Origin: Ylistrum balloti
Lineage: Eukaryota
Direction of reading: 5' to 3'
Assembly: GCF_031769215.1 (NCBI RefSeq)
Contig: NW_026782534.1
Location: forward strand, 248,001 to 312,000
DNA: 64,000 bases
Below are positions 35,501 to 61,492 of the stretch, piece after piece (position 1 is the stretch's first letter; each line of letters begins with the position of its first letter). Below the pieces are notes generated by a model, which was not told where the DNA came from, searched no databases, and worked only from the letters and a program-made list of their open reading frames with translations. A program made the position numbers and the translations under genes.

Positions 35501-35772
35501 AGAATTTTCATTATTAAACCACGATATCTGAGCGCCAGGAGAATATTTTTTACAATATTGAATACTTGCTGAGACGCTTATTTCCTTGCACAAGGGGATC
35601 ACATTGATTGGAGGCATATCAATGTGCCGTCTTTGTCGAAAATAAGTAGGGATGACTTCTTCCCAGCATTAATGGCCTTGGTAGGTTTGACAATGTTAAT
35701 AGTTCTGACTTATGACAGGGCGGTGTTGTGATCTGTTACGGAGCTGTAGGTGGCATACCTGCCACGAACACA
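32502..35772 (-). pseudogene. Pseudogene of the HAD-HAD-choline dehydrogenase fusion gene (copy 0)
   Basis: Exon-2 remnant 35569-35772 (FDKDGTL with in-frame stops); only the 3' end of exon 3 remains (~34484-34580, DIHAA, TGG>TAG); last exon from 34081 is frameshifted, with ~780-bp and ~50-bp deletions in the GMC domain; C-terminus ...PVYKNNV* at 32502. Confidence 0.9.
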
Positions 35773-36664
35773 TGTAAGATGGACTCAGCATGACAGACAG
35801 GAAAAGTGATGCTCGCAGGAAGAGGTGAACATACTTAAACACAGATTGACACAGACAGTACTTGCTTCTTCGGAAGACACCTCGGTAAAGATAAAACAAA
35901 TAGTGTTTCTCTTAGGGATACATACTGATATATATGTTTTAATTACATTTACAGATAGATATTGTACACCCTGAACACAAAGTCTTTGTGATCTCATTCA
36001 TGTAATCCTTCTGATTCCACAAGCCATCACTTATCGACATGGGGAAGGTATGCGTGGAAAATAACTTGCTAATATCGTGATGCAGACTCTATCGAATTAC
36101 AGCCGACCTGTCAATAATCTGATACAGGCGTACTTTACCGTCTTCTCCAGCCTGCATTCGGTGAACATTTCACGGGAAGAATAGGGACCACTAATGATAA
36201 TTTTCTGTCACGTGACCTATATATATAAATGAGCAGCATTAATAATGTGAAATCCATGGAGTGAAGAGCAGGCAAGAGGAATTTGTTGTCGTAATTGTTG
36301 TAATATGAGTTTGTATTCCTATTATAATTCACATTAATTGAAATTCAACTTTGCTGCATTGACAAGTCATTAAACAAAAACAAATTTTTGCCTTCTCCAT
36401 GATTTTACTTTCCATGGGTAAACATGAAAGGGACATCTTCCTTTGTCTTCTGACGACCTGTTACCATGCACCCCAAACAGTTTGATAATTAGGGATGAGT
36501 GCTGTATTATATCTCTCAATTCCCCACGTTTGTCCAGATCCGTCGGGTTTTGTCTTTTGATTATAATATTGTTGAATACTTTGATTCAGTAGTTAACTAT
36601 CTTAAAGATTAAACAAACAGTGCAAATGATATTCTAAATAACTAAATTTTCTCTGTTTCAAGCT

Positions 36665-39009: not shown

Positions 39010-39095
39010 CTAACTACACCTATACACAGGAGCATTAGATCGGGGCAGTGGTTTGTTCCCCAGGATAATGTCAGCGGCCTTCTCAGCTATCATTA
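39010..39095 (-). pseudogene. Orphan relic: last 27 codons of another choline dehydrogenase copy
   Basis: Reads [27 protein letters not shown]; its 3' flank is homologous to the copy-2 flank. Confidence 0.85.
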
Positions 39096-39281
39096 CATGC
39101 TGCTGCCAATAAGCTATGTTGGAGCTGAAAGGAAAGGACATCTATATTTTATACATTAGCATTTATTTCTTCAAGCAAACAACAATAACGATTTGTAAGC
39201 AACAAGTAGTCTATACAAGTAGTGCTTTTAAAATAGAATAATATTCTACCAAACCCTATTTGAGAATCATTATTTAATTTG

Positions 39282-42200
39282 CTATACTTTGTTCTTGTAT
39301 ACAGGAGCATTAGACCAAGACAGTGGTTTGTTCCCCAGGATAATGTCAGCCGCCTTTTCAGCCAGCATTATTGTCGGGCCGTTCAGGTTTCCAGTAATAA
39401 TATTTGGCATGATAGAGGCATCAACTACTCGAAGATTATCTACACCTAAAACACGAGTCTGAGAATCCAACACAGCCATCGGGTCACTCTCATCTCCCAT
39501 TTTACATGTACATGATGGATGGTAGTCGGTGTCTCCATTAGCACGGTTGAAAGCATCTATTTCAGCGTCTGATTGACAATTAGGTCCAGGCTTTATCTCT
39601 CGACCAGCACGGAAAGGATCGAACGCTTTCTGTTTAAACACTTTCCTTGCAGCTTTAACGCTGTCCCTCATTGTCCTCAAATCATATTCTGTAGACAGGT
39701 AGTTGGCTACAATCTTTGGATGGTCTTTTGGATTTCTGGTTTTCAGCTTGACATAGCCTCTACTGGTGGCGCGCATAGGTCCCGCGTGGAGTTGATAGGC
39801 ATGTTCATTACCAGTATTACGCCCATGATCGTTTGTAACAGCTGGTACGAAATGGAACTGAATGTCAGGATATTCTAAGCCTTCTTCACTTGGAACAAAC
39901 CCGCCACTTTCGAAGTGAGTCGTCGCTCCATCACCTGTCTGTGTAAGGAACCACTGAAGCCCAATGCGAATCATATTGTGAGGGAATTTCCACTGAGCAG
40001 AATAAAGAGTGATGGGAAGCTTGCATGCCTCCTGTACACATACATCAAGATGGTCCTGGAGGTTTTCTCCAACACCAGGAAGGTGTTGAACTACAGGAAT
40101 GTCCAGCGACTTCAGCTCGTCTGCATTACCTACACCCGATAACATGAGAAGCTGAGGAGAGTTGATTGATCCTCCACTCAAAATCACCTCCTTCTCTGCT
40201 CTGATAACCTTTTTTACTCCCTTCTGTTCATACTCTACACCCACGGCTCGCTTGTTCTCAAATACAATCCTCGTGGACAAGGCATTTGATTCCACTGTCA
40301 CATTGTCACGTTTTAAAGCTGGCCTGAGGTAAGCCATAGCAGCACTCCATCGCCGGCCTTTGTGAATGGTCATGTCCATCGGCCCTACGCCCTCCTGCTG
40401 ATAGCCGTTCATGTCTTCTGTAAACGGGAAGCCGGCCTGCTGACCTGCTTCTATAAAAGCCTGATGCAGTGGGTTGTTGGACTTTCCTCGTGATACGTGA
40501 AGAGGACCATCACCTCCCCTGTAGTCATTCTCCCCAAGTTCATGGGTCTGAGATTTTTTAAAGTATGGTAAACAGTCAGCATATGACCATCCCTTTGCCC
40601 CAGCCTTCTCCCATCCATCATAATCACCAGCATTGCCACGGACGTATACCATGGCATTGAGTGAAGACGATCCTCCCCAGACTCGTCCTCGTGGCCAGTA
40701 CATGACCCTGTTGTTCATGTTAGGCTCTGGTTCGGTATGGTAGAACCAGTTGTACTTGTTATCATACAGGTTGTACATGAGGGCAGCAGGCATGTGTATT
40801 TTCCAGGTGTAGTCTCTTGGACCAGCCTCCAGAACACACACTTTGTTGTTTGGATCAACAGACAGTCGATTGGTGAGAGTGCAGCCAGCTGATCCTGCAC
40901 CAACGATGACGTAGTCGTAGGTGGATCCAGCTCTAGATATCGTGGATACATTCCTCACCTGTATACCATTAATGCAACTGGACGATTGTCTCCTTCGTGG
41001 CGTGGTGCTGAAATATCGACTCTGGAGGTCGACCTTCCTCGTCAGAGGAGCCACATTTAGATGTATCTTCCGTTTATTGGGACTGGTCGATGAGTCATCC
41101 ATGATATGATCAATCACATGGTCTGCAGTAGGTACAACTAGGTCGGTGACCCACTGCAGGTCATCTGCAGACCCTACACCTGATAACACACCAATCTTTT
41201 GCACCCTCGTTGATCTTCCAAATGCAAAATCTTTGAAAGAATCACCAACTAAGACAGTTTTCTCAGGGCTGACATTGAGTTCGTCACATATGATTTGTGT
41301 GCTGTGATCAAGAGATCGTGCGAAAAAGTGCGGATCATCTCCACAGATCATCATATCAACATACTTCAAAACACCTAGATGTGTCAAATCTGACAGAGCA
41401 AGCTCTCGTTTATCTCCAGTACATATTGCTATTTTGATTTCTTTTCTCTTTAGTGTTTTGAAGAATTTTTTTATATCCCTGAGAAGAGATTGTGGTTCTT
41501 CTCGAAGTATACATTCACACTCCTGCCAGACTTTGTTCACAACCATCAGAGACTCCTCATATGTCAAGTGTTTATGGATCATCTCCACTAGTGACGACCT
41601 CACCTCCAAGTTAGCGGTTCCATGTTCATTCAACAGCCCGTTCTTTACTTTACCTGTCTGTTCGCATATGCCTAGCCTCTGGTAAATTTCTGATCTCAGA
41701 TCACAAAGACCAGTCGCTTGTTCTAAGCTGTAACGTAAATGAGAGGATCAATGTACAACTGATCTTGACTCAATTCAGATTATAAAAATTTTGTTTGCAA
41801 CATCATGCATTCTTAGCTTAAGACAAATGAGGTATACTAATGTTTATGTATACAATGTCATACGCCATGGCCAATGATGGACACTTTTGAGAATGACTGA
41901 TGGAATATGGAATAAAATTATAATCGTCGGATAACTTATTTAATCGGACGAGGTTCCTATTATGTAAGCAAGTTGTCTTTGCCAACGAAATTAGTTCTGA
42001 ATTAACCAAGAGTGATTTTTCTAAAATTAATCAAAAATAACTAAAAATTTTCACTGATAAATTTGGACCCTGATCTTCAGAACATTACCCTAGAATTCTA
42101 CCTATTATTCTACAGTGTTTACACATGTTGTATTTTCCTTGGAAAAAGGATGGGCATTACCAGGAATTGAACAAGACTGTATCATTATGAATTTTGGGGG

Positions 42201-45200
42201 CTCTAATCGTCAAAAAATCAATTGCATGATTGAATCAATGATAAGAAAACGAGGTAATTTTCAGTAATTTTCACTCAACTTCAGACGATTGCATTTCTAA
42301 TGCACGTCGTTCAGAAGTCTTAACATATATATTTACTGTGTTAGTTAGGATAATATATTTAAGATATTTAAAGCATCAAATCGTAATACATACTTTGAAC
42401 AGATTTGGTCCGTCCATTTGCCGAACCTGCTGTGGGCACAGAGGATGGTACCATGGAGATCTAAGATGATCAGGGCAACAGTCGGTACATGATTTTCAAC
42501 ACTAGCATACTCATCAGAATTGGAAGATTCCAAGGAATATGGTTCGATCAAGATTCTTTTGTCATTGGAGTAAGCGTAGCATTCCCTCCATTGGTCCTCC
42601 GGTAGGATGAGGGGCAACAAGTCTTGGACACTTTCTATAACATGATTGGCCGCTGGGTACAAATCATTTGTCTGACCTATACCACTTAATACCCCTATAT
42701 TCCAGCCAAGCTGTGCTGCCTTTCCCATACCCACATCAGCTTTGGTGTCTCCCACCATGACAGTATCTTCAGGGTTCACACCAAGCATTTCGCAGATCAG
42801 CTGAGCGTTATCTGCAGCAGGTTTTGGGACATTAGTTGGGTCATCACCACAAACGATGTGATCAATCCATTTGTGAATTCCTATATCATGTAGCAATGCT
42901 TCAGTGGCTTGCCGTCGATCAGAAGTACAAATAGCGATCTTAATTCCGTTTCTTTTCAAAATCTTAAACAAGGTGTTCAGGTCCGCTAACGGTTTAGTTT
43001 GGAAAATACCATGTCCATCTTCCCAAATGTTGATCACAATGTCACGACCTTTGTTTTCATCGAGACCTTCTTGTCTGAGAAGCTCTACTAAAGCATCTTG
43101 TACCATTTCATCAGTAGCCTCCGCAAACAGACCTGGCACAACACGGTCAGATTCGTTACAAAATCCGATCTTTTTAAACACTTTTTCTTGAATGTCTAGT
43201 CCGGTGTTTTCTTCCAACCTGAAACGTTAGCGTTACTGATGTGATCATCTTAATTTGTTAAACATACCACAGTCCATGATGATATCGTATAAAACAGTAT
43301 ACCATTTACCAGAAAAAAACTTTCATTAAAATTTACCTCCACCCCTTTCACGCTTCCAAAAATAGAGCAAACAATAATAAACAGCAAAGGAATACCAACA
43401 TTTTAACATAATCATATATCAAACCCAAATCAAATAAACTAGAATAAATATGAATAAAAAAAATCACACAAAGTACAAGGAAAACAGCACCAGGTGTTCC
43501 GAAAGAGTGAGCATCAACTGCTTCATCGACATCCGCCATGTAAATCTTGTCAATCCAAGTACGCAGTGTCACGTTCTCAAATGAGAACATGGTATACAAC
43601 GGAACCAACAGGCATAAAAAAACATTCAGCTTCATATCGCACAAAAAAATGTAAAACTTCCCCGGAAACCTCACCAATCTGTATTTTTTGAAACGCTGTG
43701 TTAAGTGTTTGTTCTTCAGTTGACAACTTCTTTCACGGAAATCGTAATAATGGGAACATGCCATAAAATATCGAATTAGCTATTTCTTGAATTCATTGAT
43801 TTTAACATACAGCATCGTGGAAAGCTGTCCATGATGGTTTCAGTTTCAGAAAAGAGAGAAATAATCGACTGATGTGGAAGAATCTATAGTGTACTTGATT
43901 TCCAATTCTTGATAAGAACATCAATATATGTTTAACACAATATAAACCACCAATTCGACAACATTTAAATAACTTACCAGACAAAGTCAATGAGGTGATA
44001 TAGTCGGTATTTTCTTAATTTTCATACCTGATTGGTATTAAAAAAAATAAGGAAAACTTCCTTAATGACAGCAAACACAGTAGTAATATTCTAGTGTGTA
44101 TTGTGAAATCAGTCATTTTCATAGGGCTACATTTTTGTTGATTTTATGTATACTCTTTATCAATTAATCCATATGTTCATGATAGTGGATATCGTAAGTG
44201 CTAATGTAAATCACTTAGATTCAGCGAATACTTCTCTTAACGATCCCGCATCGTCAGACATATTCGCGAATACATGATTTAGAATTGACTTCAACTTCGC
44301 AAATGATTAGCAAATGATGAAACACGGACTATTCAAGACTCCGATATCGGTTACAGAATCAACATAGATGCTTTCCAAAGTTACAAAATACAAATAATAG
44401 CGAGGTATTTGAATTTGCTATTGACACTCAACGCGGATTCATGCGAAAATAAATCCCACGCAAAATATAAGTGATTTACATTGTTCATTCAAAATTAAAC
44501 GTGAAACCCGAAAATATTTAATTTGATAGTATTGAATACTTACTTAGACGCTATTTTCTTTGCCCAATGAGACCACATTGCCTGACAACATATCAGGGTG
44601 CCGTCTTTGTCGAAAATAACTAGGGATGCCTTCTTCCCGGCATCAGTGGACTTGGTAGGTTTGACACTGTTGATAGTTCTGACTCTTGAAAGGGTGGTGT
44701 TATGATCTGTTACCGAGCTGTAGGTGGTGTAACTGCCACAAACACCTGGAAGAAAGGCATAGTAAGACAGTTATGGATATTGTAGCTCCTAGGGAAAGAC
44801 AGTACATGCGTCTTCGGGAGATTCGATAAAGAAAACCTATCAGATCAAACAATTGTGCGTCCCTTAGGAATACATGTACATACTTAGACACAACATATTA
44901 AATAGAGAAATTAAGACATACGCCTTCAATAGATGCCCGTATTTCTTAATGTGATTGGCAGCCCTTCCTTACAAGTTAGATAATTGTACCATTTGGAAAC
45001 GTCTTTGGCAAATGAGAACAGCAAGGAAAATATCTTATGCCAAAGAAGTGTGATACAAAGATTCTGGATTTCCCATTTAAAAAATATAAATTAAATTAAA
45101 TTACTTAAAACGAATAACATGCATACTTCACTTATGTATATGAATACTTCATTATTTTCACTTCTGCACTTAATTAGTAATATGTGAGCTGCAGTACGCT

Positions 45201-45436
45201 TGAATTACTACAAACAGTTTTATATCTGAAAAAAAGTTTCACGAACGTTCCTGTCCTCACAATAAGACCTGGATTTACATATGCAGGGATGAAATCTTTG
45301 TGCACTACACACCTAACAAATGCTTTAGTTTGGGGTGGTATGCCGATATATTCTTTGAAGCTTTCGACGCAGTGAAGATTCTGCTGAGACAACCGGGACG
45401 AAGCAGTCCTATGCAGGTCTTTCCAACAGTTGCCAT
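39282..45436 (-). CDS. CHDH: Mitochondrial HAD-HAD-choline dehydrogenase fusion, copy 1; coding exons 45436-45313, 44745-44544, 43218-42394, 41727-39282 (1198 aa)
   Basis: GT-AG exons of 124/202/825/2446 nt with phases 1,2,2 give one ORF. HAD motifs DKDGT, T, K, GDTKAD; second HAD DLHGT...GDSFKD. GMC motifs [36 protein letters not shown] and GNLNGPTIM closely match vertebrate CHDH. Confidence 0.9.
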
Positions 45437-48400
45437 TTTGACTGTTAACTTGTGCGGAAGCGTTTTATTCTATTTGCCTGTAATAAAAATAAAATCAATA
45501 GAATTAATTCACACCTGGTGCTCTTCAAATCTGTTTACAATTTTGAATTCGTATCTATGTGCTTGAAATATTCACGATTTCCTATATCAATATTTTTCTG
45601 TATTGTTTATCGATTTAGATGGTAAGAAGAATGTTAAACAATTTTCACGTTTAAAAAGTGTCCATTCAACGTGGAAGTCGATAGAAGAATGCATGTTTGA
45701 ATCATTTAAAGAGAGCTGTGTATACTTATACGGATTATGGGAAACAACTTTTACTTTTAATATTTGTTAAATCTGTCCTATTGCTTTTTTGATAATTCGT
45801 AAAAATATTGTATATGTATATACTTAAATGACTCTCGTTCTATAAGTGTAATTGTATTGTATACACAGTGCACTTCGCCCTCCTTTAATTTGTATTAATA
45901 TCTACTAATAATGAATAAATGCTTACTGCGATATATGTATATAAAATTTGATATTGCACATTATACTTTAGATTTGTTAAGTTTGTTCACTGAAGAGTAG
46001 GAAAGGTCGGGGTAGAAAACAATCATGACTTTATGTAAATATTCCTGTATCTGGGTCAAGGATACACACGTAAATATAGTAACCTGAACATGTCAGTGGA
46101 GTGTGTTATTTCTGTTTGTAGTATATGTGATATAAGGAGTACCTCCATGGTCCACTGGGCTACAACCTTCAACAGCAATCATTTCCTTAGATGTATAACT
46201 GGTTATGTTGTCGTGTTGTTTAAGTATTTCGGAACGAAGTAAAGAAATAAAAAAAAATAGAGGTTATATCAGGCATAGGTGGATTTAGGATATTTCTAAG
46301 TGTGTTAGACATAAGCTACCTTGAACAGAGAACAGTCTCCTGTAATCAATGGCATCTTCTAACACATTTGAAATAGCAGGGAAAATAAACGTGAAGTCAC
46401 ACTGACACTAATGTTTTACTTACGGGAAAAGAAAACCTGAGTGACTGTGGTTAGCTAACACTGATAACATGATGTAGACGAAAGCTATCCCGCTACAACC
46501 TACCTGTCAATATAGGCGATATAGTGTGTGTTTTTTTCTGCTCCGCCAACATGCAGTCAGTGCAACTGTCCTGCTGAAACCAGTGGTATAAAATATCATC
46601 ATACTTTACTCGGATAACGATACTTATACAACAGGAGATAACATTTCATTGCTTCCAGTATCTACATAACGTGCCACGGTCAAAAACTAGAGATAGTATT
46701 ACTACTTACGATAACTTCCTGTCTCGTGGTCTACACATGTTATGAACACCGTTAAGCATGACCTTTTGTATAAAAGCAGTGACTTAGAACAGCAAGGGAA
46801 CTTCTTGGGGTTAGGGTATAATCTTACTTGTTGTTGTCACATTAGCATTAAACTGAAATTCAGCATTGATAGCCTACATTACATTCACAATAATCTTGCC
46901 TCTCGTAAGAAAACTTGAAAATGCGTGTTCATGTGTCCCATTATTAAAATATCATAGGCGTACCATGAGTAAGTATGAACAAATTGTGAATCTTTATTCA
47001 ATTACATTTACTGTTGTGTCCCGACATATAGAATTGGAAATTTGTGGTTGTGGTGGGGAAGAGGGGAGGGGGGGGGGGCATTATATATATATATATAAAA
47101 TGTGATATCGGGTGAGGTCGTATTTGTCACAATCCGTCAACATTTGCCAGAGTTACGGGACTTGATAATTTCAAAAAAGATATTTTTTCTGTTTCCGTCA
47201 AACAACTGTCATCTTAACGGTCCTACTTGAACTAACATTGTTATGATGTTCGAATTAATTCGATATTTGTCAAAATCCATCAGAGTTAAGGACTTAAAAA
47301 AAGTTTCTACGTCTTCGTCCAGTAATTTTATTTTATTAAGCTTTATTTTAGTGCGGTCTTGAATGGTTTCAGTAATGGTAATTTTTTGCCATAGCTACTG
47401 GAATAAATAATAATCAGGAAAATACTACGACACTGAATAAAACTAACAACCTGCTTCGTTTAACGAACATAAATAGGTGTTTCAGTTTCATTTCGTTTTC
47501 CTAAATATGTCAAGTATGCCCCAAAGTCTCTTTACCAATCAGTAGCTCAATTCCTTTTAGAAAACGTTTTCTTATTTAGCACATGCATTCCTAATGTGCT
47601 TTCTTACTCGAATGTACTATATTTGATGCCTATGGCAAAGATACCTTTCAATTAAATTACCAAGCCCTCGTGTTTGCTTAGCCTTTATGAATGACTTACC
47701 CTCGGGATTGTGTTTATCAAACATATCTTATCTTCTTATCTCTTTTGCCTTTATGTTATTGAATAATTTGAGTAATATTATGGCCTAAACGTTGTTATTA
47801 TTATTCATTTTCTCAAGCTGTATATGTCCACAGAAATAGATTATAGTTTCAATTTTTCGGTTTGTTAGTTATAATTATATCATTATAACGCCAATATGAG
47901 TTATTGTTTAGTTGTTAAATTTACTCAGAAACATTCAATATTCAGGAATAAAACATAATTATTTTTGTAGTGTCATTTAAGAATTCTTAATAACTATTGA
48001 TGAAATTTTAAAATAATCCTTATTACATTGAGCTGCGTAGATTAATAACAATATGCTATGAACGTGTAATATCCGCCATGTTGTGGATATTACTAAACCA
48101 AATTATTAATTACATCTGGATTACGAAAGAGCGGATTAACTGCGCCTCTATCAGAATACTAATTTAAAAAAATAAATAAATAAAAAAAGATAAAAACTAT
48201 CAGGATCGATGACAATCCATATTCTAGTTGTTTATTATTTGTTCTTTATTTTTTTACGGTTCATTGGAGATGTGATGCTCCTGGATTTGTAGAGTAATAT
48301 CGCGATTGTCTGGTAGTTAAACACAAACTACTATGAAAAACAGTGATTTATTTATCATTCACAAACTACATGCGGAATTATACTCATTTTTTTAAAATAG

Positions 48401-49032
48401 CATAACTATGGAAGTCACAAAGCATTATTGATACATTTAACAAAAAGATTTTCTCTCAGAAATGTAATATTTTTGGCTGATTGTATCAATGAAGCGTTAC
48501 CGATACATTTAACAAAAACATTTTCACTCAGAACTATAATACTTTTGGCTGATTTTGATGAAGGTTTTGTGAAAAAGGCAATTTATTGACAGCTTGAAAT
48601 ATCACCTCAATTACGACAAGCAGTAAAAAACCGCATAATTTGTATTCAATTAAACACGCAGATTTCATGTTTTAAAGCGCCATAATATGTAAATATTTAT
48701 TATCGGTAAGATTGTAATGATATCTTTTCAAAAATAAAATTGATATAACAAATCTTAAACGAAAAAGGTAAATTCAATAAAAAGGGAAAGTCTTGATCGA
48801 AGGCTTTGCAAAGTTTATTTGTAGTGCATACATTGATACAGAACACATCACATTGAATCCAATATTGTGTACTTCGCTTGGATATAAAAATCAGAGTGCT
48901 GGGGATATCTCTGTTAGCCCGTATTAGCTTCATGTTTTGTTTTTGTTTTGTTCTTTTTTATCATTATCATTTTTCCTGTCAACTATATATTACCATCAAT
49001 AATTTCGTGCATAACCAGATACAAATGTTCTC

Positions 49033-52000
49033 TCACTTACTACATTTATACACAGGAGCATTAGACCGAGGCAGTGGTTTGTTCCCCAGAATAATGTCAG
49101 CGGCCTTCTCAGCCAGCATTATTGTCGGGCCGTTCAGGTTCCCAGTAATAACATTTGGCATGATAGAGGCATCAACTACTCGAAGATTATCTACACCTAA
49201 AACACGTGTCTGAGAATCCAACACAGCCATCGGGTCACTCTCATCTCCCATTTTACATGTACATGATGGATGATAGGCACTGTCTCCCAAAGCCCGAACA
49301 AAGGCGTCTATTTCAGCGTCTGTTTGACAATTAGATCCAGGCATTATCTCTCGACCAGCGCGGAAAGGATCGAACGCTTTCTGTTTAAACACTTTCCTTG
49401 CAGCTTTGACGCTGTCCCTCATTGTTCTCACATCATATTCTGTAGACATGTAGTTGGCTACAATCTTCGGATGGTCTTTTGGATTTTTGGTTTTCAGCTT
49501 GACGTACCCTCTGCTTGTAGCACGCATATATCCCACATGCAGTTGATATGCATGTTCATCGCCATTTTTACGCCCATGATCGTTCACAACAGAAGGTAAG
49601 AAGTGAAACTGAATGTCGGGATATTCCTGACTTTCTTCACTATGGACAAACCCACCACTCTCCAAATGTGCGCTGGCTCCATCTCCTTTCTGAGTCAGAA
49701 ACCACTGTAGACCTATCCGAATCATATTGTGAGGGAATTTCCACTGAGCAGAATAAAGAGTGATTGGAAGCTTGCATGCCTCCTGTACATACACCTCAAG
49801 ATGGTCTTGGAGATTTTCTCCGACACCAGGAAGGTGTTGAACTACAGGAATGTCCAGTGCCTTCAGCTCGTCTGCATTACCTATACCCGACAGCATGAGT
49901 AGCTGAGGAGAGTTGATTGATCCTCCACTCAAAATCACCTCCTTCTCCGCTCTGATAATCTTTTTTACACCCTTCTGTTCATACTCTACACCCACGGCTC
50001 GCTTGTTCTCAAATACAATCCTCGTGGACAGGGCATTTGATTCCACTGTCACATTGTCACGTTTTAAAGCTGGCCTGAGGTAAGCCATAGCAGCACTCCA
50101 TCGCCGGCCTTTGTGAATGGTCATGTCCATCAAACCTACACCCTCCTGTTGATAGCCGTTCATGTCGTCTGTAAACGGGAAGCCAGCCTGCTGACCTGCT
50201 TCTATAAAGGCCTGATGCAGTGGGTTGTTGGTTTTTCCTCGTGACACATGAAGAGGACCATCACCTCCCCTGTAGTCATTCTCCCCAAGTTCATGGGACT
50301 GAGATTTTTTAAAGTATGGTAAGCAATCTGCATATGACCATCCCTTTGCCCCAGCCTTCTCCCATCCATCATAATCACCAGCATTACCACGGATATAGAC
50401 CATGGCATTGAGCGAAGATGATCCTCCCCAGACTCGTCCTCGTGGCCAGTACATGACCCTGTTATTCATGTGAGGCTCTGGTTCGGTATGGTAGTACCAG
50501 TTGTACTTGTCATCACAAAGATTGTACATGAGGGCAGCAGGCATGTGGATCTTCCAGGTGTAGTCTCTTGGACCAGCCTCCAGAACACACACCTTGTTGT
50601 TAGGATCTGCAGACAATCGATTGGTGAGAGTACAGCCAGCTGATCCTGCACCAACGATGACGTAATCGTAGGTGGATCCAGCCCCAGATACCGTTGAGGC
50701 ATTCCTCACCTGTACAGTACTGGTGAAACTGGTTGGTTGTTTCGCTCGTGGCTTGGTGCTGAACAATCGACACTGGCCATTGATACCTTGGGGCTTCCTG
50801 ATCGAAGGAATGCCAGCTGGGGATATTTGTTTACGGGCTTGTGGATCTTTTAAAATATGATCAATCACATGATCTAGAGTAGGTACCACCAAGTCGGTGA
50901 CCCACTTCAGGTCATCTGCAGACCCTACACCTGATAACACTCCGATCTTTTGTACCTTTGTTGATTTAACAAAAGAAAAATCTTTGTTAGAATCACCGAC
51001 TATGACAGTTCTCTCAGGACTGATATTGAGTTCATCACATATGAGGTGCGTGCTGTGATCAGGAGACCTTGAGACAGAGTGTGGATCATCTCCACAGATC
51101 ATCATATCAACATATTTCAACACATCAAGATTTGTCAAATCTGACAGTGCAAGTTCTCGCTTATCTCCAGTACATATTGCTATTTTGATTTCGTTTCTCT
51201 TTAGTGTTTTGAAGAATTGTTTGATGTCCTTGTGAAGTGATTTTGGTTCTTGAAGAAGCGTAGATTCACACTCCTGCCAGACTTTGTTTACAACCATCAA
51301 AGACTCCTCATATGTCAAGTGTTTATGGATCATCTCCACTAGTGATGACCTCACCTCCATGTTAGTGGTTCCATGTTCATTCAACAGCCCATCCTTTATT
51401 TTACTTGTTTGTTCACATATTCCAAGCCTCTGATGAATTTCTGATCGCAGACCACAAAGACCAGTCGCCTGTTCTAACCTGTAACAAAAATTGAGGCCCC
51501 GAATTATTTCTGTCTTGTATTTCTGTACATACTGTATTTAGAGCTCGTAATAGCGTTTTGTAGACAAGGTTACATTTTGTGTCTCGGAATTAAGTCAGGG
51601 TGTTGAGTTAGTATTCCTTTTTGTTCATCTCTTTATGTCCAAAGACTGATACAAAAGATACAAAAGTGAAAATTTAAGAATTAGATATATTAAAGCTTGA
51701 CAATGAATTTAACCGAATCCTGCAGCTGTTTCATCCTTCTAGGTCCCGTCAGCGACGGACGCTTAGGGTTTGCATATAGAAAGCAAGCAAAGAACTCTGT
51801 GACTTGACGTATTATAATGTTTCGATGTAAATTTTAAGTGAGGGTCATGACTCTGATTACAAAGTTTAAACTGTATGCAATACAGACCTTGAGCAGATTT
51901 GGTCCGTCCATTCGCTGTACTTGCTGTGGGCACAGAGGATGGTACCATGGAGATCTAAGATGATCAAGGAAACAGTCGGTACATGATTTTCAACACTAGC

Positions 52001-55000
52001 ATACTCATCTGAATTTGAAGATTCCAGAGAGTATGGTTCGATCAAGATTCTTTTGTCATTGGAGTAAGCGTAGCACTCCCTCCATTGATCCTCCGGTAGG
52101 ATGAGAGGCAGTATATCCTGAACATTTTCGATCACATGACTAGCAGCTGGATACAAATCACTTGTCTGACCTGTGCCACTCAGTACACCAATATTCCAGC
52201 CGAGCCGCGCTGCCTCTCCCATTCCCACGTCCGCCTGGGTATCTCCCACCATCGCAGTATCTTTAGGGTTCACGCCAAGATTTTTGCAAATCCTTTCAGC
52301 ATTATCAGCAGCAGGTTTTGGAACATTGTCAGGGTCATCACCGCATGCGATTTGATCAATTAAACTGTGGATTCCGAATTCTTCCAGAATTTCTTCAGTT
52401 CCTTTCCTACGGTCAGACGTACAAACAGCAATCTTAATATTGTGTCTTCTCAAAATTTTAAACAATGTTTTTAGATCTGCCAAAGATTTGGTTTTATAAA
52501 TGCCGTGTCCCTCCTCCCAGACGTCGTGTACAATGGCGTGACATTTGTCCTTATCCACACCCTCCTGTTTGAGAACGTCAATTACAGCATCTTGGACCAT
52601 TTTAGTTGTACCCTCTGCCAACAAGCCCGAGACAACTCGGTCAGATGAACTACAGAATCCGATCGCTTTAAACACTTTCTCCTGAATATCAAGACCGGTC
52701 GCTTCAACCAACCTGAAATTATAAATCGATGAAATTAGATGTTGGTTTATCAATAATACATTCAATAATATTTTTATATATTGTTATGGTATTTGTCATA
52801 GAAAAGTAAAAGTATCAACAATTAAGCAACATTAAAACACGAGTCTGAGAATCAGCCATAGGTCGCCATCCGTTCCCATCTCATACTCTTATGATCGACG
52901 GTAGACACTTTCTTAGAACATCAATGTTTATTTATTGAGAAGGAGAAACCCTGCTTTATAAGGACAGGCAATAACAAATACTAATTTAAGAAATTTATTA
53001 TACACCTGTCAGCAATAAAGAGCATTCATTACATATTACGTAACAATTTTATAACATTCTGTCCTTCTACAATAACATCAACGTGATTAATATACAGTGT
53101 TCGCTTTCAAAAAGTTGTGAAATTTTTTTCCGAATCCTAAGAACAACTTTTTAGTTTGAAATGAAATATTTACTTGGAGGCTATTTTCTTTGACCATGGG
53201 ACCCACGTTGTTTGACAGCATACCAAGGTGCCGTCTTTGTCGAAAATAACTAGGGATGCCTTCTTCCCGGCATCAGTGGACTTGGTAGGTTTGACACTGT
53301 TGATAGTTCTGACTTCTGACAGGATGGTGTTATGATCTGTTACGGAGCTGTAGGTGGCGTAACTGCCACGGACGCCTGGAACAATTAAAAAACAAAACAT
53401 GAATAGCAAGAAAGTCATTGTTAGAGAAAAGTTTACACGAAATTATGAATTTATCACAAAAGCGTTTCGTCCTTGTAGGAATCATCAGTAACAGGGGCAT
53501 CACTAATGGAAATCTTGAGGAGGAGTTGGAAAAAATATATTTAAAAATGAGCTGTTGAACTGCAGATGGGAAGCACTACTAGTACTAGTTTATGTCACTA
53601 TTCATATGCACTAAAAGGTGGCGGGTGTAATGTAACCTCAAGAATTTCATCAGCGGAGTTTTTAATCGTAAAGGATTGTACGAAATACATACAAGGGAAT
53701 ATCATTTTTCCAAATGACTATAGTAATACATACACTGTATGTACAAATTATTATTTATACTGCAGCATACTGCTATTTCCTCCTTCTTGGACTCGTTCGG
53801 CCTAACGTGAATGACAGTTACACTATGACCCATATGGAAGAGTATGCCCCTCTTTGTAAGATATATTTTTTGTCTGAAACAGTCGTTTTAACTTGTATCT
53901 AACGACACCTTTCATTGTAATGAATCGGATCGAAATTTTCCTCTTCAAACTGCCCATCAAGGAACTACTTTTTGCCTAATCGAAAGACTTCAAAAGTTTC
54001 TAAAGATAGAATTACATTGAAATCTACCAGCTTCATTTCAGAATAGGATTTTTGTTAAGATCTTAATACAAATGGAATTGAGTGACAGGCGAAACCTATA
54101 AAAACCCTCTCCTTAGAAAATCAAAAAGATGTACTCGTAAAATTGAATATGTAAGTAACCTAGGATAGCTGTATAACAAGGCGTGTGTTTTTGGAAAATG
54201 TAACTACTAGTTTTAATGGCGGTTGTGCTACACGCTATTTTCAAATGTATTAAAGGCAGATAAGTTGTCCATTCATTCGTAACACTGCGCATGTCCTTAC
54301 TAGATAGTTGACAGATATCGATACAAAGTAATTACCTAATAACGTTAACGAATCCCTATACTGACTCCACAATCGATATATTTGTGCTTCCATCAAGATC
54401 GAGAGAGCCATGTAGAAAGATCTCCCTGAGCAGAGAGAGAGAGTTGTCGAGAACTTTTTTGTAAGTATGGAAGGTGATAAATGTTTTCTTGTCTGTATAC
54501 ATAATATTCAAGCTTTACGCTATTGTGGTTTTGCGTTACAGTGTAATATATATTACAAACGTTATATGATAAAAAAGATTGCAATGTGATGATAATAAAC
54601 AAAGGTTACCAACTGTGTAAGGAAAAAAACATTCTTAACTGTTCTCTTCTTTTACACAACTAAGAAGCGCCTACACGCTTGAATAAAACATATGAGATAC
54701 ACCATGAACAGTGTGACATATATAACACATTGAACATAGACAGATATCCAATATACCCACGAGACTTCAGGAATTAGAGGCAATATTGGGCGAGAAATTA
54801 ACTGGACAAAAACACACAATGAAAAAAGGATAAAAACGATTTTATAGTATTATTTGTAATCTAATATTATCAGTCATTTCAAAAATCACTGTTCGGGTAT
54901 CCGAAGGTCGACTTCCAAAAATACTTTGTAATTATATACCAATATATGGTAACATTTTGAACCATTTATACAAATGGTATACATTAATGTTTTAAGAATA

Positions 55001-55141
55001 TTTTCAACACCACATACCTAACATAGTTTGTAGTTTGGGGTGGTATGCCGGCATATTCCTTGTAACATTTGATGCTGTCAAGAGTCTGCCAAGACAACCA
55101 GGACGCAGCATCCCTATGCAGGTCTTCAAAACTGTAGTCAT
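49033..55141 (-). CDS. CHDH: Mitochondrial HAD-HAD-choline dehydrogenase fusion, copy 2; coding exons 55141-55018, 53375-53174, 52712-51888, 51478-49033 (1198 aa)
   Basis: Exon lengths and phases identical to copy 1. Canonical CHDH residues [13 protein letters not shown] and GNLN; HAD1 DKDGT/K/GDTQAD intact. Upstream non-coding exon donors at ~56217 and ~56241. Confidence 0.92.
52833..52880 (-). other. Short CHDH last-exon fragment inside intron 2 of copy 2
   Basis: taaaacacgagtctgagaatc (21 bp) is identical to the CHDH DSQTRVL coding segment, followed by degenerate agccataggtcgccatccgttcccat resembling the adjacent CHDH sequence. Confidence 0.6.
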
Positions 55142-56789
55142 GGTAACTGTTAACTTGAGGGATAACTTATTTTTCAATGGAATAGTTTATCTGTAATCAA
55201 GCAATACTATTAGAATTTAAAGATAAAAGCATACATTTAAAATTTGTTTTCATCAGCTAAGAAGAATCTTTTCAATTATATCCTACATCATGATTTATAC
55301 GAAATCAACAATTTTCAAACAGACGCAATTCCTGGGTTTAAAAATATTTTCTTAAGTGCCCATATGATTGTATAATTAATAGGAAAGTTGAAAAGACGTT
55401 TGATTTTCCCATACAAAATCCCTCAAACAGAATCATTGCATGCATTTTACATTTTTGGAAAAAAAGTCATGGTACTAATTGCTGTCTATTTTGTTATATT
55501 GTGAACAGTACTCCCTTTATTAGCATATGTAATATTTAATTTCTGTATAAAATTTCTGGTATTCTAATCAATGACAGAAGCCATATTTAAGCAAAATTTC
55601 TGTTATTCTAATCAATGACAGAAGCCATATTTAAGCAATCTTAAAATACAGAAAAACCTTCATGTACCCAGGTAATACTGAGTCGGTCATTACCATTGAC
55701 CGATACAGAATTGATCATTAAATCTGAGAACAGAAATCATGTTACAGATGCTTGCTACTTTAATTATCCGTTTGACAGAGGCTGACTTATTACAAGTAGA
55801 AAGTCTTTATACAAAGGTCTATACAACAAACATGGTGATATTTTATACGTGATCAGTACATTTTACAAGTTAACACCATCGACATCGAACATTCGTGCTG
55901 GGGTATTTAAATGTGATTGACGGGAACGTTCTCAATAGAAAGCATAGAAAAATGATTTAACACCCAGTGATGTTCGATTCTCTTAGATTCTCAACCTGTT
56001 GATAACATCACTTGTATGCAAAAATATCTTTACAACTTTGAACACTATTTCTTGGTAAATCTAGATAATCAGGTCTGTTATCATTATAACAATGCTTCCC
56101 AAATATAGGACGTGAATTTGAACACACACGTGATTTTAATTAGATAACTTATCATGTTCATAACATTTCCATTTCAAATACGAGATTATTATATCTTTCT
56201 TATTCAGATTAATTACCTGTTACTCCAAGCTGATACATACCTGTTTTCACTCCGACACAAGCAAGCAATCGTGAAACCTGCCCACTAAAAACTATGTGTC
56301 TGGATACACGTAGATATACTTATCATATCTTACTCAGATACTGACACATTTCACAGACATGAGATAACATTTCACTGCATCTAAAATGAACTGACAATGA
56401 CATCGTCTCGAGATTCGCCAAGCTGGGCGACCTTGTGTCTGACACACTACTTTGTTGGAACGAGTTAAGTAGGTGAGCTGGCCATGGGAATATTATCTCC
56501 CTTCTACAGATAGGGCATCATGTTGTATCGTGCAAGGTCTGAGCTTTTGGGGGAGATGGTTGCTTTCAAATATATTGTATTCGTATTTATTCCTAAGAAA
56601 GTGTCATCAATAAAAAAAATATTCGTAAAGAATATAAAAATGGGGTTTGACCTTAATTGAAAAGGATAGCTCTGGGACTATCTGAAGACGCCATACAAGG
56701 GTCGGGAAAAGACAGGAAATTAAGAAATGTGCCAACCATTTACTAGTTATAAACCTAGATCTCGTTATTTGCAATATACTACCTAACAC

Positions 56790-58620
56790 CCTCGTATCAC
56801 TGCCTTAAACCCTCGTTATACTACCTTACACCCTCGTTATACTATCTTACACCCTCGTTATACTACCTTACACCCTCGTTATACTACTTTACACCTTCGT
56901 TATACTACTTTACACCTTCGTTATACTACTTTACACCTTCGTTATACTACCTTACACCCTCGTTATACTACCTTACACCTTCGTTATACTACCTTACACC
57001 TTCGTTATACTACCTTACACCCTCGTTATACTATCTTACACCCTCGTTATACTACCTTACACCCTCGTTATACTACTTTACACCTTCGTTATACTACTTT
57101 ACACCTTCGTTATACTACCTTATGTCTTCGTTATACTACCTTACACCCTCGTTATACTATCTTACACCCTCGTTATACGTTATACTACTTTACACCTTCG
57201 TTATACTACTTTACACCTTCGTTATACTACCTTATGTCTTCGTTATACTACCTTACACCCTCGTTATACTACCTTACACCCTCGTTATACTACCTTACAC
57301 CTTCGTTATACTACCTTACACCTTCGTTATACTACCTTACACCCTCGTTATACTATCTTACACCTTCGTTATACTACCTTACACCCTCGTTATACTACCT
57401 TACACCCTCGTTATACTACCTTACACCTTCGTTATACTACCTTACACCCTCGTTATACTACCTTACACCTTCATTATACTATCTTACACTCTCGTTATAC
57501 TACCTTACACCCTCGTTATACTATCTTACACCCTCGTTATACTATCTTACACCTTCGTTATACTACCTTACACCTTCGTTATACTACCTTACACCTTCGT
57601 TATACTACCTTACACCCTCGTTATACTACCTTACACCCTCGTTATACTACCTTACACCTTCGTTATACTACCTTACACCCTCGTTATACTACTTTACACC
57701 TTCGTTATACTACCTTACACCCTCGTTATACTACCTTACACCCTCGTGATACTACCTTACACCTTCGTTATACTACCTTACACCTTCGTTATACTACCTT
57801 ACACCCTCGTTATACTACCTTACACCCTCGTTATACTATCTTACACCCTCGTTATACTACCTTACACCCTCGTTATACTATCTTACACTCTCGTTATACT
57901 ACCTTACACCCTCGTTATACTACCTTACACCCTCGTTATACTACCTTACACCCTTGTTATACTGTCTTAAACATTCGTTATACAACCTTACACCTTCATT
58001 ATACTACCTTACACCCTCGTTATACTACCTTACACCTTCGTTATATTACCTTACACCCTCGTTATACTACCTTATGTCTTCGTTATACTACCTTACATCC
58101 TCATTATACTACCTTATGTCTTCGTTATACTATCTTACATCCTCATTATACTACCTTATGTCTTCGTTATACTACCTTACATCCTCATTATACTACCTTA
58201 CATCCTCATTATACTATCTTACACCCTCGTTATATTTCCTTACGCGTTCGTTATACTACCTTAAACATTCGTTATACTACATTATGTATCCGTTATACTA
58301 CCTTTCATCCTCATTATACTATCTTACGCCTTCGTTATACTACCTTATGTCTTCGTTATACTATCTTATGCCTTCGTTATACAACCTTACACCTTCGTTA
58401 TACTACCTTACACCTACATTTTACCTTACATTCTCATTATACTACCTTACACTTTCGTTTTATCTTACATCCTCATTATACTACCTTACACTTTCGTTTT
58501 ACCTTACATCCTCATTATACTACCTTACACTTTCGTTTTACCTTACATCCTCATTATGCTACCTTACACCTTCATTTTACCTTACATCCTCATTATGCTA
58601 CCTTACATCTTTGTCTTTCT
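56790..58620. repeat. 21-bp minisatellite (~85 copies), decaying to the right
   Basis: Unit cttacaccctcgttatactac; explains the YYLTPSL/VILPYTL pseudo-ORFs. Confidence 0.95.
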
Positions 58621-60834: not shown

Positions 60835-61492
60835 GTTAAGAAGGTAAATCTGACCTACCTATTGATGTACAGTGTTTTGGAGGTATATCTGACCTACTTA
60901 TTGATGTACAATGTTTTGGAGGTACATCTGACCTACTTATTGATGTACAGCGTTTTGGAGGTACATCTGACCTACTTATTGATGTACAGTGTTTTGGAGG
61001 TACATCTGACCTACTTATTGATGTACAGTGTTTTGGAGGTATATCTGACCTACTTATTGATGTACATTGCGATGGAGGTATATCTGACCTACTTATTGAT
61101 GTACAATGCAAGGAGGTATATCTGACCTACTTATTGATGTACATTGCAATGGAGGTATATCTGACCTACTTATTGATGTACATTGCGATGGAGGTATATC
61201 TGACCTACTTATTGATGTACATTGCGATGGAGATATATCTGACCTACTTATTGATGTACATTGCGATGGAGGTATATCTGACCTACTTATTGATGTACAT
61301 TGCGATGGAGGTATATCTGACCTACTTATTGATGTACATTGCAAGGAGGTATATCTGACCTACTTATTGATGTACATTGCGATGGAGGTATATCTGACCT
61401 ACTTATTGATGTACCTTGCGATGGAGGTATATCTGACCTACTTATTGATGTACATTGCGATGGAGGTATATCTGACCTACTTATTGATGTAG
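60835..61492. repeat. 39-bp minisatellite (~17 copies)
   Basis: Unit gaggtatatctgacctacttattgatgtacattgcgatg, with a left subtype ...tacagtgttttg. Confidence 0.93.

Follow-up and report, generated by a model that had tools for sequence, protein, structure and literature searches.

Organization of the locus

The stretch of DNA analysed here (64,000 nucleotides, referred to as the window) contains paralogous nuclear genes of Ylistrum balloti arranged in tandem, with at least three intact copies and one pseudogene (Table 1). Gene models were obtained by a brute-force splice search, which gave for each of the complete copies, A and B, a single model reproducing the RefSeq protein. The copy A locus matched P0005 with 100% tblastn identity, and the sequence search with P0001 (copy B) returned a 100% identical RefSeq prediction from Y. 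balloti. In both copies, the four coding exons measure 124, 202, 825 and 2446 nt and the introns are GT-AG throughout; the splice models agree in their coordinates with the first-pass annotation, which had described two complete genes of 1198 aa with identical exon structure. Its statement that the last exon carries most of the second HAD domain (HAD2) and the choline dehydrogenase (CHDH) in one frame was also borne out, considering that the minus-strand ORFs at 39282-41633 and 49033-51384, both of 783 aa, contain most of one HAD domain together with the Pfam domains GMC_oxred_N and GMC_oxred_C in a single frame. The order along the polypeptide is presequence, HAD1, a conserved structured connector, HAD2, a linker and a full CHDH.

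Table 1. Features of the tandem array (positions in the window).
Feature	Position	Strand	Basis
Degraded fourth copy (pseudogene): exon-2-like piece and broken exon-4-like region	32505-35781	-	tblastn HSPs, shifting frames
Orphan short duplicate of the CHDH C-terminus (~aa 1170-1197)	39013-39096	-	tblastn; blastn of locus A vs locus B
Copy A, complete gene (LOC132559680, P0005, 1198 aa)	39282-45436	-	sole splice solution, reproduces P0005
Copy A coding exons	45436-45313, 44745-44544, 43218-42394, 41727-39282	-	splice search
Copy A HAD1	42585-44632	-	counterpart of copy B HAD1
Copy A HAD2	41082-42482	-	counterpart of copy B HAD2
Copy A linker	40923-41081	-	counterpart of copy B linker
Copy A CHDH	39282-40922	-	counterpart of copy B CHDH
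Copy B, complete gene (LOC132559670, P0001, 1198 aa)	49033-55141	-	sole splice solution, reproduces P0001
Copy B coding exons	55141-55018, 53375-53174, 52712-51888, 51478-49033	-	splice search
Copy B HAD1 (aa 80-320), interrupted by intron 2	52079-53262	-	Pfam Hydrolase and HAD_2
Copy B HAD2 (aa 355-599), interrupted by intron 3	50833-51976	-	motif table, alignment, didomain model
Copy B linker, aa 600-652	50674-50832	-	motif and composition
Copy B CHDH, aa 653-1198 and stop	49033-50673	-	GMC_oxred_N, GMC_oxred_C, TIGR01810
Copy C: HAD2 tail, linker and whole CHDH, open frame, exits the window edge	62131-64000	-	tblastn, 86-90% identity

The translation of copy C runs through 622 stop-free codons before its stop. 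In the pseudogene, the exon-4-like region is split over frames -1, -3, -2, -1, -3 and -2 (tblastn), and an equivalent of aa 805-1063 is missing, while the orphan duplicate lies about 190 bp downstream of the copy A stop codon. The third intact copy and the pseudogene had been overlooked in the first-pass annotation, as had the degeneracy of HAD2 and the existing NCBI gene prediction. No Ylistrum transcript was found in the collections searched, where P0001 matched only the genome scaffold.

The HAD and CHDH domains

The C-terminal domain is a full CHDH, as had been proposed: it exceeds the equivalog cutoff (732 bits) of TIGR01810 (betA) in both copies, with 786 bits for copy B and 772 for the other, and matches the choline dehydrogenase structure PDB 9lq0 over its full length (2.5e-178). 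The FAD-binding GxGxxG and the ten-residue segment of the catalytic His are conserved.

HAD1 is predicted to be a catalytically complete, Mg-dependent phosphatase of subfamily IA with a helical C1 cap. All four of the catalytic motifs previously reported, FDKDGT, (I/V)CTSD, PKP and GDT(K/Q)AD, are present (D87, D89, T207, K241, D266 and D270 in copy B) and invariant in every species examined, across 12 molluscs and across phyla; the AF2 model (pLDDT 94.3) has the HAD-IA C1-cap fold. Pfam, NCBIfam and Foldseek concur with the earlier description of HAD1 as a C1-cap HAD like the phosphoglycolate phosphatases (PGP) and not of the PHOSPHO1 type. Phosphoglycolate phosphatases, NANP, PpaX and enzymes like them gave its best matches by profile and fold, none being choline-specific. 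Because these matches fall far below the family cutoffs (60 bits against 225 for the NCBIfam PGP model) and identity to the nearest relatives (phosphoglycolate phosphatase, NANP, AlnB and beta-PGM) lies at only 16-24%, they indicate the fold class and not the function. HAD1 showed no match to PF06888 in Pfam, and PHOSPHO1 and PchP structures were absent from its best 50 Foldseek matches; it would accordingly be placed outside both known families of phosphocholine phosphatases. It belongs to a distinct eukaryotic family that carries the signature C-F-H-x-M-W-x-P-W after motif I.

The "HAD x2" of the first-pass annotation holds without reservation for HAD1 only, since HAD2 is degenerate. Its motif I reads DLHGT (D362-x-H364 in copy B), the general acid/base Asp having been lost to His, and in scallops Arg has taken the place of the motif III Lys; the Asp residues of motif IV are kept. 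HAD2 is nevertheless under purifying selection (dN/dS 0.28, compared with 0.16 for HAD1 and 0.14 for CHDH), and its fold is confidently predicted in the model of the HAD1-HAD2 didomain (pTM 0.77). HAD2 is an ancient internal duplicate, and the second HAD is older than crown molluscs: the HAD1 and HAD2 domains of molluscs fall into two distinct clades (support 99/95 and 98/86), each mirroring the mollusc phylogeny. In copy B, the intron inside HAD2 has the same position and phase as that of HAD1.

A fusion conserved across Bilateria

The junction of HAD1 with motif I of HAD2 lies in exon 3, and that of HAD2 with CHDH in exon 4; as each junction sits inside one exon, the fusion does not depend on splicing. 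The oyster contig L001 contains a complete fusion ORF of 1191 aa. On the M. gigas genomic locus it falls into five aligned blocks, and the four gaps of 150-828 nt between them fit GT...AG introns; the contig is therefore a spliced mRNA.

The fusion is conserved across Bilateria, being found in six animal phyla and in more than 30 species. The HAD-HAD-CHDH arrangement occurs in bivalves, gastropods, cephalopods, an annelid and a flatworm, and HAD-CHDH in a hemichordate, a copepod and an acoel, while nematodes and a tunicate have an unfused HAD with a presequence-like N-terminus. As to whether the architecture had already been described, which the first-pass annotation had left undecided, predictions named "uncharacterized protein" or "choline dehydrogenase" are widespread in RefSeq and UniProt, but our literature search found no paper discussing it. 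The qPCR primers for the oyster "ChCDH", which was treated as a key enzyme of betaine synthesis in a study of its seasonal expression, encode peptides of the fusion HAD2. The oyster "ChCDH" betaine gene appears to be the fusion gene.

The presequence and the internal linker

The basic N-terminus, whose acidic residues begin only at position 55, with a net charge of +6 or +7 up to there, probably targets the protein to mitochondria, in line with the acid-free presequence and the mitochondrial location already proposed. A second segment of this kind precedes CHDH. The copy B linker has no acidic residue among its last 45, is rich in K, R, S and T, and includes an R-x-F-S-T motif; across the 22 tabulated fusions, the 45-residue stretch ahead of the Rossmann start contains 0-4 acidic and 5-10 basic residues. 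The motif, as R-x-F/Y-S-T/S, is conserved in molluscs, the annelid, the flatworm, the hemichordate and the acoel (the copepod has a looser R-x-L-S-T), and R-x-F/Y-S-T also ends the N-terminal presequences of two stand-alone CHDHs, one from a lizard and P0218. The linker therefore looks like a retained ancestral mitochondrial presequence of CHDH.

A possibility, though not the likelier one, is that the protein is a polyprotein, whose precursor would be imported by means of the N-terminal presequence and cut at the internal linker by the matrix processing peptidase, so that the mature products would be a phosphatase made of HAD1 and HAD2 and, separately, a conventional CHDH. This would fit either of the functional readings discussed below. 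The composition of the linker and the motif shared with the ends of stand-alone CHDH presequences point in this direction, and yeast Arg5,6, a precursor split into two enzymes within the matrix, provides a precedent. On the other hand, the linker evolves fast outside the motif (36% identity between copies A and B), so that only the short motif is constrained, and this may itself be a relic of the joining of the two genes. No conserved Met that would permit an alternative start was seen in the linker alignment.

Proposed function

The most economical reading is the sequence phosphocholine to choline to betaine aldehyde, with phosphocholine as the candidate substrate: HAD1 would free choline from a phosphocholine-type ester and the fused CHDH would oxidize it, within a conserved, probably mitochondrial, fusion protein. 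We give this reading a probability of about 0.45. After import into mitochondria, HAD1 would hydrolyse a choline phosphate ester, most likely phosphocholine, and CHDH would convert the resulting choline into betaine aldehyde, leaving a separate aldehyde dehydrogenase to complete glycine betaine. HAD2, with weak catalytic activity or none, would assist HAD1 in a structural or regulatory role, and the precursor may be cleaved after import at the internal R-x-F/S-T site. The "one-gene route to glycine betaine" of the first-pass annotation was therefore overstated, because CHDH stops at betaine aldehyde and the gene encodes no aldehyde dehydrogenase. The functional coupling of the HAD family with CHDH, in contrast, is strengthened by the recurrence of the fusion: consecutive steps of one pathway are the simplest explanation for its having persisted, or arisen anew, in six phyla. 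Arguing against phosphocholine, HAD1 resembles neither known family of phosphocholine phosphatases, and the HAD would be placed in the matrix, while phosphocholine is synthesized in the cytosol and not known as a matrix metabolite.

It is conceivable, if less likely, that the fusion is real but HAD1 acts on a phospho-metabolite unrelated to choline, such as phosphoglycolate (metabolite repair), a sugar phosphate, or a phosphate-bearing cofactor (for example FMN or PLP), or that it regulates CHDH; the fusion would then stem from common targeting or co-regulation and involve no transfer of substrate. This would suit the best family and fold matches of HAD1, although these are too distant to indicate function, as well as the stand-alone orthologues of nematodes and the tunicate, which imply that physical coupling is not obligatory. 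Moreover, CHDH is a flavoenzyme, and some HADs hydrolyse FMN. The six-phylum fusion is, as said, explained more simply by consecutive pathway steps.

Cleavage of phosphonates, rather than phosphate monoesters, by a phosphonatase-like HAD1 is very improbable. Phosphonates are abundant in molluscs, the "PhnX-like" TIGR03351 is among the top NCBIfam matches and PhnX structures are among the Foldseek matches, but the TIGR03351 scores (55-57 bits) do not come near the 219 required, HAD1 retains the +2 Asp that is replaced by Ala in PhnX (phosphonoacetaldehyde hydrolase), and the HAD family is also found in nematodes, copepods and tunicates. Finally, although the NCBI models are automatic predictions, some relatives are flagged "LOW QUALITY PROTEIN" and partial models of 640-1056 aa occur, a mistaken merging of neighbouring HAD and CHDH genes by prediction or read-through is contradicted by the shared exons, by the full-length spliced mRNA contigs of oysters and by the recurrence in more than 30 species, and has a negligible probability.

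If true, the preferred reading, in which HAD1 supplies choline to CHDH, points to a phosphate-ester route into betaine synthesis.

Comparison with known systems

The C-terminal 546 aa of the fusion correspond to BetA and to vertebrate mitochondrial CHDH, being a full-length GMC flavoenzyme that aligns end-to-end with 9lq0. Canonical CHDH lacks the additional ~650 N-terminal residues with the two HAD domains, and the N-terminal presequence of the stand-alone enzyme has become an internal linker in the fusion. In yeast Arg5,6, too, the two enzymes are linked by an internal segment that resembles a presequence and bears an MPP-type Arg motif; the likeness of the fusion is one of motif and composition only, and its cleavage is hypothetical.

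As regards HAD1, it is matched best in fold and profile by bacterial phosphoglycolate phosphatase (Gph) and mammalian NANP/HDHD4, both of the HAD-IA type with a C1 cap. They have the four HAD motifs in common with it, as well as the position of the helical cap behind motif I, but their low identity is accompanied by scores that miss all equivalog cutoffs. Plants make betaine from phosphocholine via a phosphatase step. In Pseudomonas, a HAD phosphorylcholine phosphatase, PchP, stands upstream of BetA and BetB (pathway: PMC4113454). The logic proposed for the fusion is the same, a HAD-superfamily phosphatase freeing choline from phosphocholine for oxidation, but these routes use separate proteins of other HAD subfamilies, and the activity of the fusion is hypothetical; HAD1 is not detectably a member of the PchP or PHOSPHO1/PECP1 families.

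Acinetobacter MtlD differs in its mannitol-1-phosphate dehydrogenase, which is of an unrelated family, and in its reversed order, considering that the phosphatase would act first in the fusion; NF046057 reaches only 20-35 bits (cutoff 800). Nevertheless, MtlD also combines a HAD-IA phosphatase, a structural neighbour of HAD1 (TM ~0.6), and a dehydrogenase in one polypeptide that makes a compatible solute.

Gene structure and transcript evidence

An ORF scan of the window revealed two 783-aa ORFs on the minus strand, one in each of the two complete gene copies A and B (table below), together with upstream ORFs of 290 and 299 aa. In the Pfam analysis, each 783-aa ORF contained GMC_oxred_N and GMC_oxred_C in its C-terminal 545 residues and the rear two thirds of a haloacid dehalogenase-type phosphatase (HAD) domain in its first ~180 residues, and the two upstream ORFs contained a separate HAD domain. 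A protein search showed that both genes are already covered by RefSeq predictions of 1198 aa each, namely P0005 (LOC132559680, copy A) and P0001 (LOC132559670, copy B). A brute-force splice search over GT/GC donors and AG acceptors gave exactly one model per gene that reproduces the respective RefSeq protein, with four coding exons (124, 202, 825 and 2446 nt) and GT-AG introns throughout; the coordinates and the length of 1198 aa proposed for both genes in the first-pass annotation are confirmed by these unique models. Exon 3 encodes the rear of the first HAD domain (HAD1) and continues through a conserved connector to motif I of the second (HAD2), while exon 4 encodes the remaining part of HAD2, a linker and the complete choline dehydrogenase (CHDH) domain. 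The architecture is hardly dependent on splicing, and the earlier claim that the HAD2-CHDH join is independent of the splice model holds, both parts being within exon 4.

The introns of HAD1 and HAD2 lie at the same aligned position (between …KIASK and L… in HAD1, and between …QICSR and L… in HAD2) and in the same phase, which indicates that HAD2 originated by duplication of a phase-symmetric exon unit. Compared with the scallop genes, the oyster orthologue (M. gigas genomic locus L003) has one extra coding intron, and hence five coding blocks; the HAD2-internal intron has the same position in both.

The exact Ylistrum sequence matched no transcript contig in the sequencing-run contig collection searched. 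The P0011 protein cluster corresponds to Crassostrea/Magallana gigas XP_011440921, and several oyster contigs of 4.0-4.5 kb, assembled from sequencing runs, contain a complete 1191-aa ORF with UTR-like flanks. When the oyster transcript contig L001 was aligned with the M. gigas genomic locus, five blocks matched, and the four gaps between them (828, 208, 441 and 150 nt) were compatible with GT…AG introns. This block-and-gap pattern identifies L001 as a spliced mRNA across HAD1, HAD2 and CHDH, so that the proposed fusion of HAD, HAD and CHDH in one polypeptide is borne out both by the shared exons and by the oyster transcript.

Some database entries had to be discarded as evidence for other architectures. 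The Pecten protein P0018 (642 aa) is not a stand-alone CHDH, as it starts with the fusion exon-1 presequence and the tail of HAD2. Proteins of 809-822 aa do not represent a separate single-HAD architecture: their start lies within the HAD2 cap, and they are ORFs of the last exon called on genomic contigs, comparable to the 783-aa ORFs of the window. The 'stand-alone' HADs of Lottia, Lingula and Paragonimus are partial models, terminating in the second HAD motif I. The Mizuhopecten and Pecten 'isoform X2' proteins (P0002 and P0003, 1051-1056 aa) start within the HAD1 cap, with neither presequence nor motif I; if these predicted isoforms are real, they would be non-imported and phosphatase-dead.

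The dehydrogenase and phosphatase domains

The CHDH domain scored 205-207 bits with PF00732 and 129-130 bits with PF05199, and its VGAGSAG motif (GxGxxG FAD site) is invariant. With TIGR01810 (betA), scores were 772.0 bits for copy A and 786.0 bits for copy B, against a curated equivalog cutoff of 732.1. The domain was also aligned over its full length with the solved choline dehydrogenase 9lq0 (E 2.5e-178, query 4-547 of 549), including the segment with the catalytic His (HPSC-CKMG). From domain content, cutoff and full-length similarity, the C-terminal domain is therefore predicted to be a choline dehydrogenase (BetA/CHDH).

The HAD1 motif residues (D87/D89, T207, K241, D266/D270) are invariant in 12 molluscs, and the same motifs are found in all the other phyla. 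In an HMM-guided alignment of 75 HAD domains, every protein had exactly one canonical domain (F-D-K-D-G-T, T, K, G-D-T-x-x-D), whose cap has the invariant signature W-x-x-W (following motif I) and L-A-E. In the AF2 model of HAD1 (pLDDT 94.3, pTM 0.91), helices 20-98 lie after strand 1 and before the core, and the model matched HAD-IA structures with a Foldseek probability of 1.0; the motif set and the cap position in the model assign HAD1 to HAD subfamily IA with a C1 cap. Its Foldseek neighbours among the PDB and the Swiss-Prot models were NANP, phosphoglycolate phosphatases, AlnB, beta-phosphoglucomutase, PhnX and, from the bifunctional protein MtlD, its phosphatase domain, all generic HAD-IA C1-cap phosphatases with 16-24% identity and TM 0.55-0.70.

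HAD1 fell below every NCBIfam equivalog cutoff by a wide margin. For the bacterial phosphoglycolate phosphatase Gph (TIGR01449 / NF009695), it reached at most 60.6 bits vs 225 and 49.8 vs 180; for the phosphonoacetaldehyde hydrolase PhnX (TIGR01422), it reached 25-34 bits vs a cutoff of 220, and has Asp, not Ala, at +2. No exon product matched the PHOSPHO1/PHOSPHO2/PECP1 profile PF06888 at E<=0.01 in Pfam, and the Pseudomonas phosphorylcholine phosphatase PchP was neither among the 10 PDB sequence matches nor among the top 50 Foldseek matches of HAD1. An ESM Atlas search with HAD1 returned 'PGP-family' clusters only. Transfer of function from the PDB sequence search, from Foldseek (pdb, Swiss-Prot) or from the ESM Atlas was rejected, because the neighbours are only generic HAD-IA or PGP-like proteins. 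The predicted structure settles the fold class of HAD1, and this fold class does not fix the substrate.

The first-pass annotation had counted two HAD phosphatases; the motifs of HAD1 are indeed complete, but HAD2 is degenerate, leaving one predicted-active HAD plus one degenerate domain. Molluscan HAD2 keeps the nucleophile Asp; its general acid/base position (+2) is occupied throughout by His, apart from two species with Asn. The Lys of motif III is, according to lineage, retained, replaced by Arg (scallops and oysters) or lost (several gastropods, cephalopods, and Mactra among the bivalves); cephalopod HAD2 also lacks motif IV. A complete catalytic motif set was not found in HAD2 in the mollusc alignment. 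In the annelid Owenia (tandem-HAD protein P0365), and likewise in the JGI protein P0079, the HAD order is the opposite, the degenerate domain coming before the other. Asp is retained at +2 of the second HAD in Lingula P0078 (FDKDGS) and Macrostomum (DKDGS); Paragonimus P0113 has Asn there. Judging from these motifs, HAD2 degeneration may be lineage-specific.

Maximum-likelihood analysis separated the molluscan HAD1s (99/95) and HAD2s (98/86) into two clades, both mirroring mollusc phylogeny, which makes the duplication older than crown molluscs. The dN/dS ratio was 0.28 for HAD2, 0.16 for HAD1 and 0.14 for CHDH, which points to continued constraint on HAD2. In the model of the HAD1-HAD2 didomain (pLDDT 86, pTM 0.77), HAD2 folds confidently, and the 34-residue connector, 100% identical in copies A and B, has defined secondary structure. 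We read HAD2 as a pseudo-enzyme, or a much-altered enzyme, that was kept for a structural or regulatory role; the locus would then be a clean case of pseudo-enzyme retention over > 500 million years.

Presequence and linker

In both copies, the first Asp or Glu is at residue 55, in agreement with the acid-free N-terminal presequence originally noticed, and the net charge before that residue is +6 or +7. An R-G-S-Y-A motif is present in the N-terminus of copy B, its Arg being replaced by Cys in copy A. Of the 11 other species examined, 10 have similar N-termini; the exception is Owenia, with an acidic residue at position 7. The composition fits a precursor targeted to the mitochondrial matrix, and a mitochondrial location of the fusion protein is, on these sequence features, probable.

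Across the 22 tabulated fusions, the stretch of 45 residues that precedes the CHDH Rossmann motif contains 0-4 acidic and 5-10 basic residues. The linker motif R-x-F/Y-S-T/S occurs in mollusc, annelid, flatworm, hemichordate and acoel fusions, and also ends the N-terminal presequences of stand-alone CHDHs (a lizard protein and a 615-aa representative). Because of this common composition and motif, the linker is best seen as a CHDH presequence trapped inside the fusion, of which the locus would be a clean case. The dN/dS of the linker is about 1.1, an unreliable value because the gapless codon alignment ignores compensating indels.

The tandem array

Features of the fusion-gene array in the window
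Feature	Position	Strand	Remarks
Fourth copy, degraded	32505-35781	-	exon-4-like part in frames -1, -3, -2, -1, -3, -2; aa 805-1063 equivalent absent; explains the local GC rise at 32-34 kb
Orphan duplicate of CHDH C-terminus	39013-39096	-	last ~28 codons, about 84-105 bp; ~190 bp downstream of copy A stop
Copy A	39282-45436	-	LOC132559680
783-aa ORF of copy A	39282-41633	-
CHDH of copy A	39282-40922	-
Copy B	49033-55141	-	LOC132559670
783-aa ORF of copy B	49033-51384	-
CHDH of copy B	49033-50673	-
Satellite array	56775-58607		between copies B and C; 21-bp unit, about 88 repeats; overlaps strong negative GC skew at 56-60 kb
Satellite array	60809-61491		between copies B and C; 39-bp unit ~17.6 times, 233-bp higher-order period
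Copy C	62131-64000+	-	tblastn; intact frame, 622 codons to stop

Copies A and B share 82.5% protein identity, with an overall dN/dS of 0.23. Their DNA similarity ends within ~10 nt of every exon boundary, and this confinement to exons shows that the duplication is old. The dS between them is about 1.0 in HAD1 and 0.31-0.34 in HAD2 and CHDH, and the tree groups the two copies as sisters in its HAD2 clade but not among the HAD1s. Both observations suggest exon-limited gene conversion between copies A and B, or a mosaic origin, although their introns are not alignable. The orphan CHDH fragment downstream of copy A probably remains from the rearrangement by which the array arose.

The CHDH of copy A carries 14 private substitutions at positions invariant in 10 other mollusc orthologues (including C705Y, D707N, E945D, Y947C, L989F, L1011V, S1013A, V1015T and A1118D); that of copy B carries one, and copy C resembles copy B. 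The oxidoreductase of copy A may be relaxed, or shifted in specificity.

Distribution in animals

The distribution search was limited to fusion-length proteins with a HAD1-like domain, and was accompanied by an exhaustive HMMER search. Proteins with the HAD-HAD-CHDH architecture (~1150-1235 aa) came from an annelid (Owenia), a flatworm (Macrostomum) and numerous bivalves, gastropods and cephalopods; those with a single-HAD-CHDH architecture came from the hemichordate Glandiceps, with 907 aa, and from the copepod Lepeophtheirus, with 863 aa. The HMMER search added a 1013-aa fusion from the acoel Convolutriloba. In the copepod-like transcript fragment P0128, the HAD leads directly into the CHDH Rossmann motif.

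When HAD1 alone was used as the query, stand-alone orthologues of ~300 aa (40-47% identity) with presequence-like N-termini were retrieved from many nematodes and one tunicate; there was no vertebrate member among the 118 matches. Some protist-looking metagenomic proteins on AT-rich contigs (P0143, P0159 and relatives) are members of the HAD family with an N-terminal SPX-like region (precomputed PF03105), a domain combination that hints at a connection to phosphate sensing.

Discussion

The fusion is a widely conserved variant of CHDH, publicly predicted and apparently undescribed. No description of the HAD-CHDH architecture was found in the open-access literature, an absence that is not proof; the open-access papers found to pair choline dehydrogenase with haloacid dehalogenase were all microbial, and a coral betaine paper mentions no phosphatase. 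Because the 'choline dehydrogenase' of molluscs and several other phyla is a three-domain protein with a predicted active phosphatase in front, both the first step and the true substrate may be missing from the accepted two-step betaine pathway.

[quoted passage not shown] The ChCDH qPCR primers gave no DNA match in a search at up to 3 mismatches. In an ungapped scan with translation, the forward primer translates as P-S-G-H-N-T-L and has its best oyster cDNA match on those HAD2 codons, with 5 mismatches, all synonymous; the reverse primer, a weaker match with 7 mismatches, encodes V-M-K-K-I-G, a HAD2 segment 111 nt downstream of the forward site. Since the primer translations fall within HAD2, the identification of oyster ChCDH as the HAD-HAD-CHDH fusion is moderately supported, and the expression and SNP studies appear to measure the fusion gene.

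Betaine is a major osmolyte and methyl donor in marine invertebrates, and oyster mitochondria regulate betaine synthesis in salinity stress. The first-pass annotation had proposed a one-gene route to glycine betaine, but the gene by itself stops short of betaine. The most economical hypothesis for the HAD1-CHDH fusion would be a phosphocholine route, to which we assign a probability of about 45%. A choline phosphate ester as the substrate is suggested, indirectly, by the maintenance of the fusion in at least six phyla, and by the fact that the only hydroxyl of the CHDH substrate is the one phosphorylated in phosphocholine. Against it stands a problem of compartment, as phosphocholine is not known as a metabolite of the matrix.

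A wider scheme seems rather unlikely at present: the HAD family would be an unrecognised mitochondrial phosphocholine (phosphobase) phosphatase, its fusion with CHDH would mark a conserved bilaterian phosphocholine-to-betaine pathway, HAD2 would serve as a pseudo-enzyme for ligand sensing or scaffolding, and after import the precursor could be split by way of the internal presequence. If true, the scheme would give an orphan enzyme family a function and account for the way in which betaine synthesis is supplied in marine invertebrates. The fusion also serves as a Rosetta stone, offering a testable function for a HAD family that is unfused in nematodes (filarial parasites included) and tunicates. 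The phosphocholine route proposed here, with HAD1 acting before CHDH, would follow the same logic as the bacterial route, in which PchP is followed by BetA, and as the plant route, and this likeness also argues for a choline phosphate ester as the substrate.
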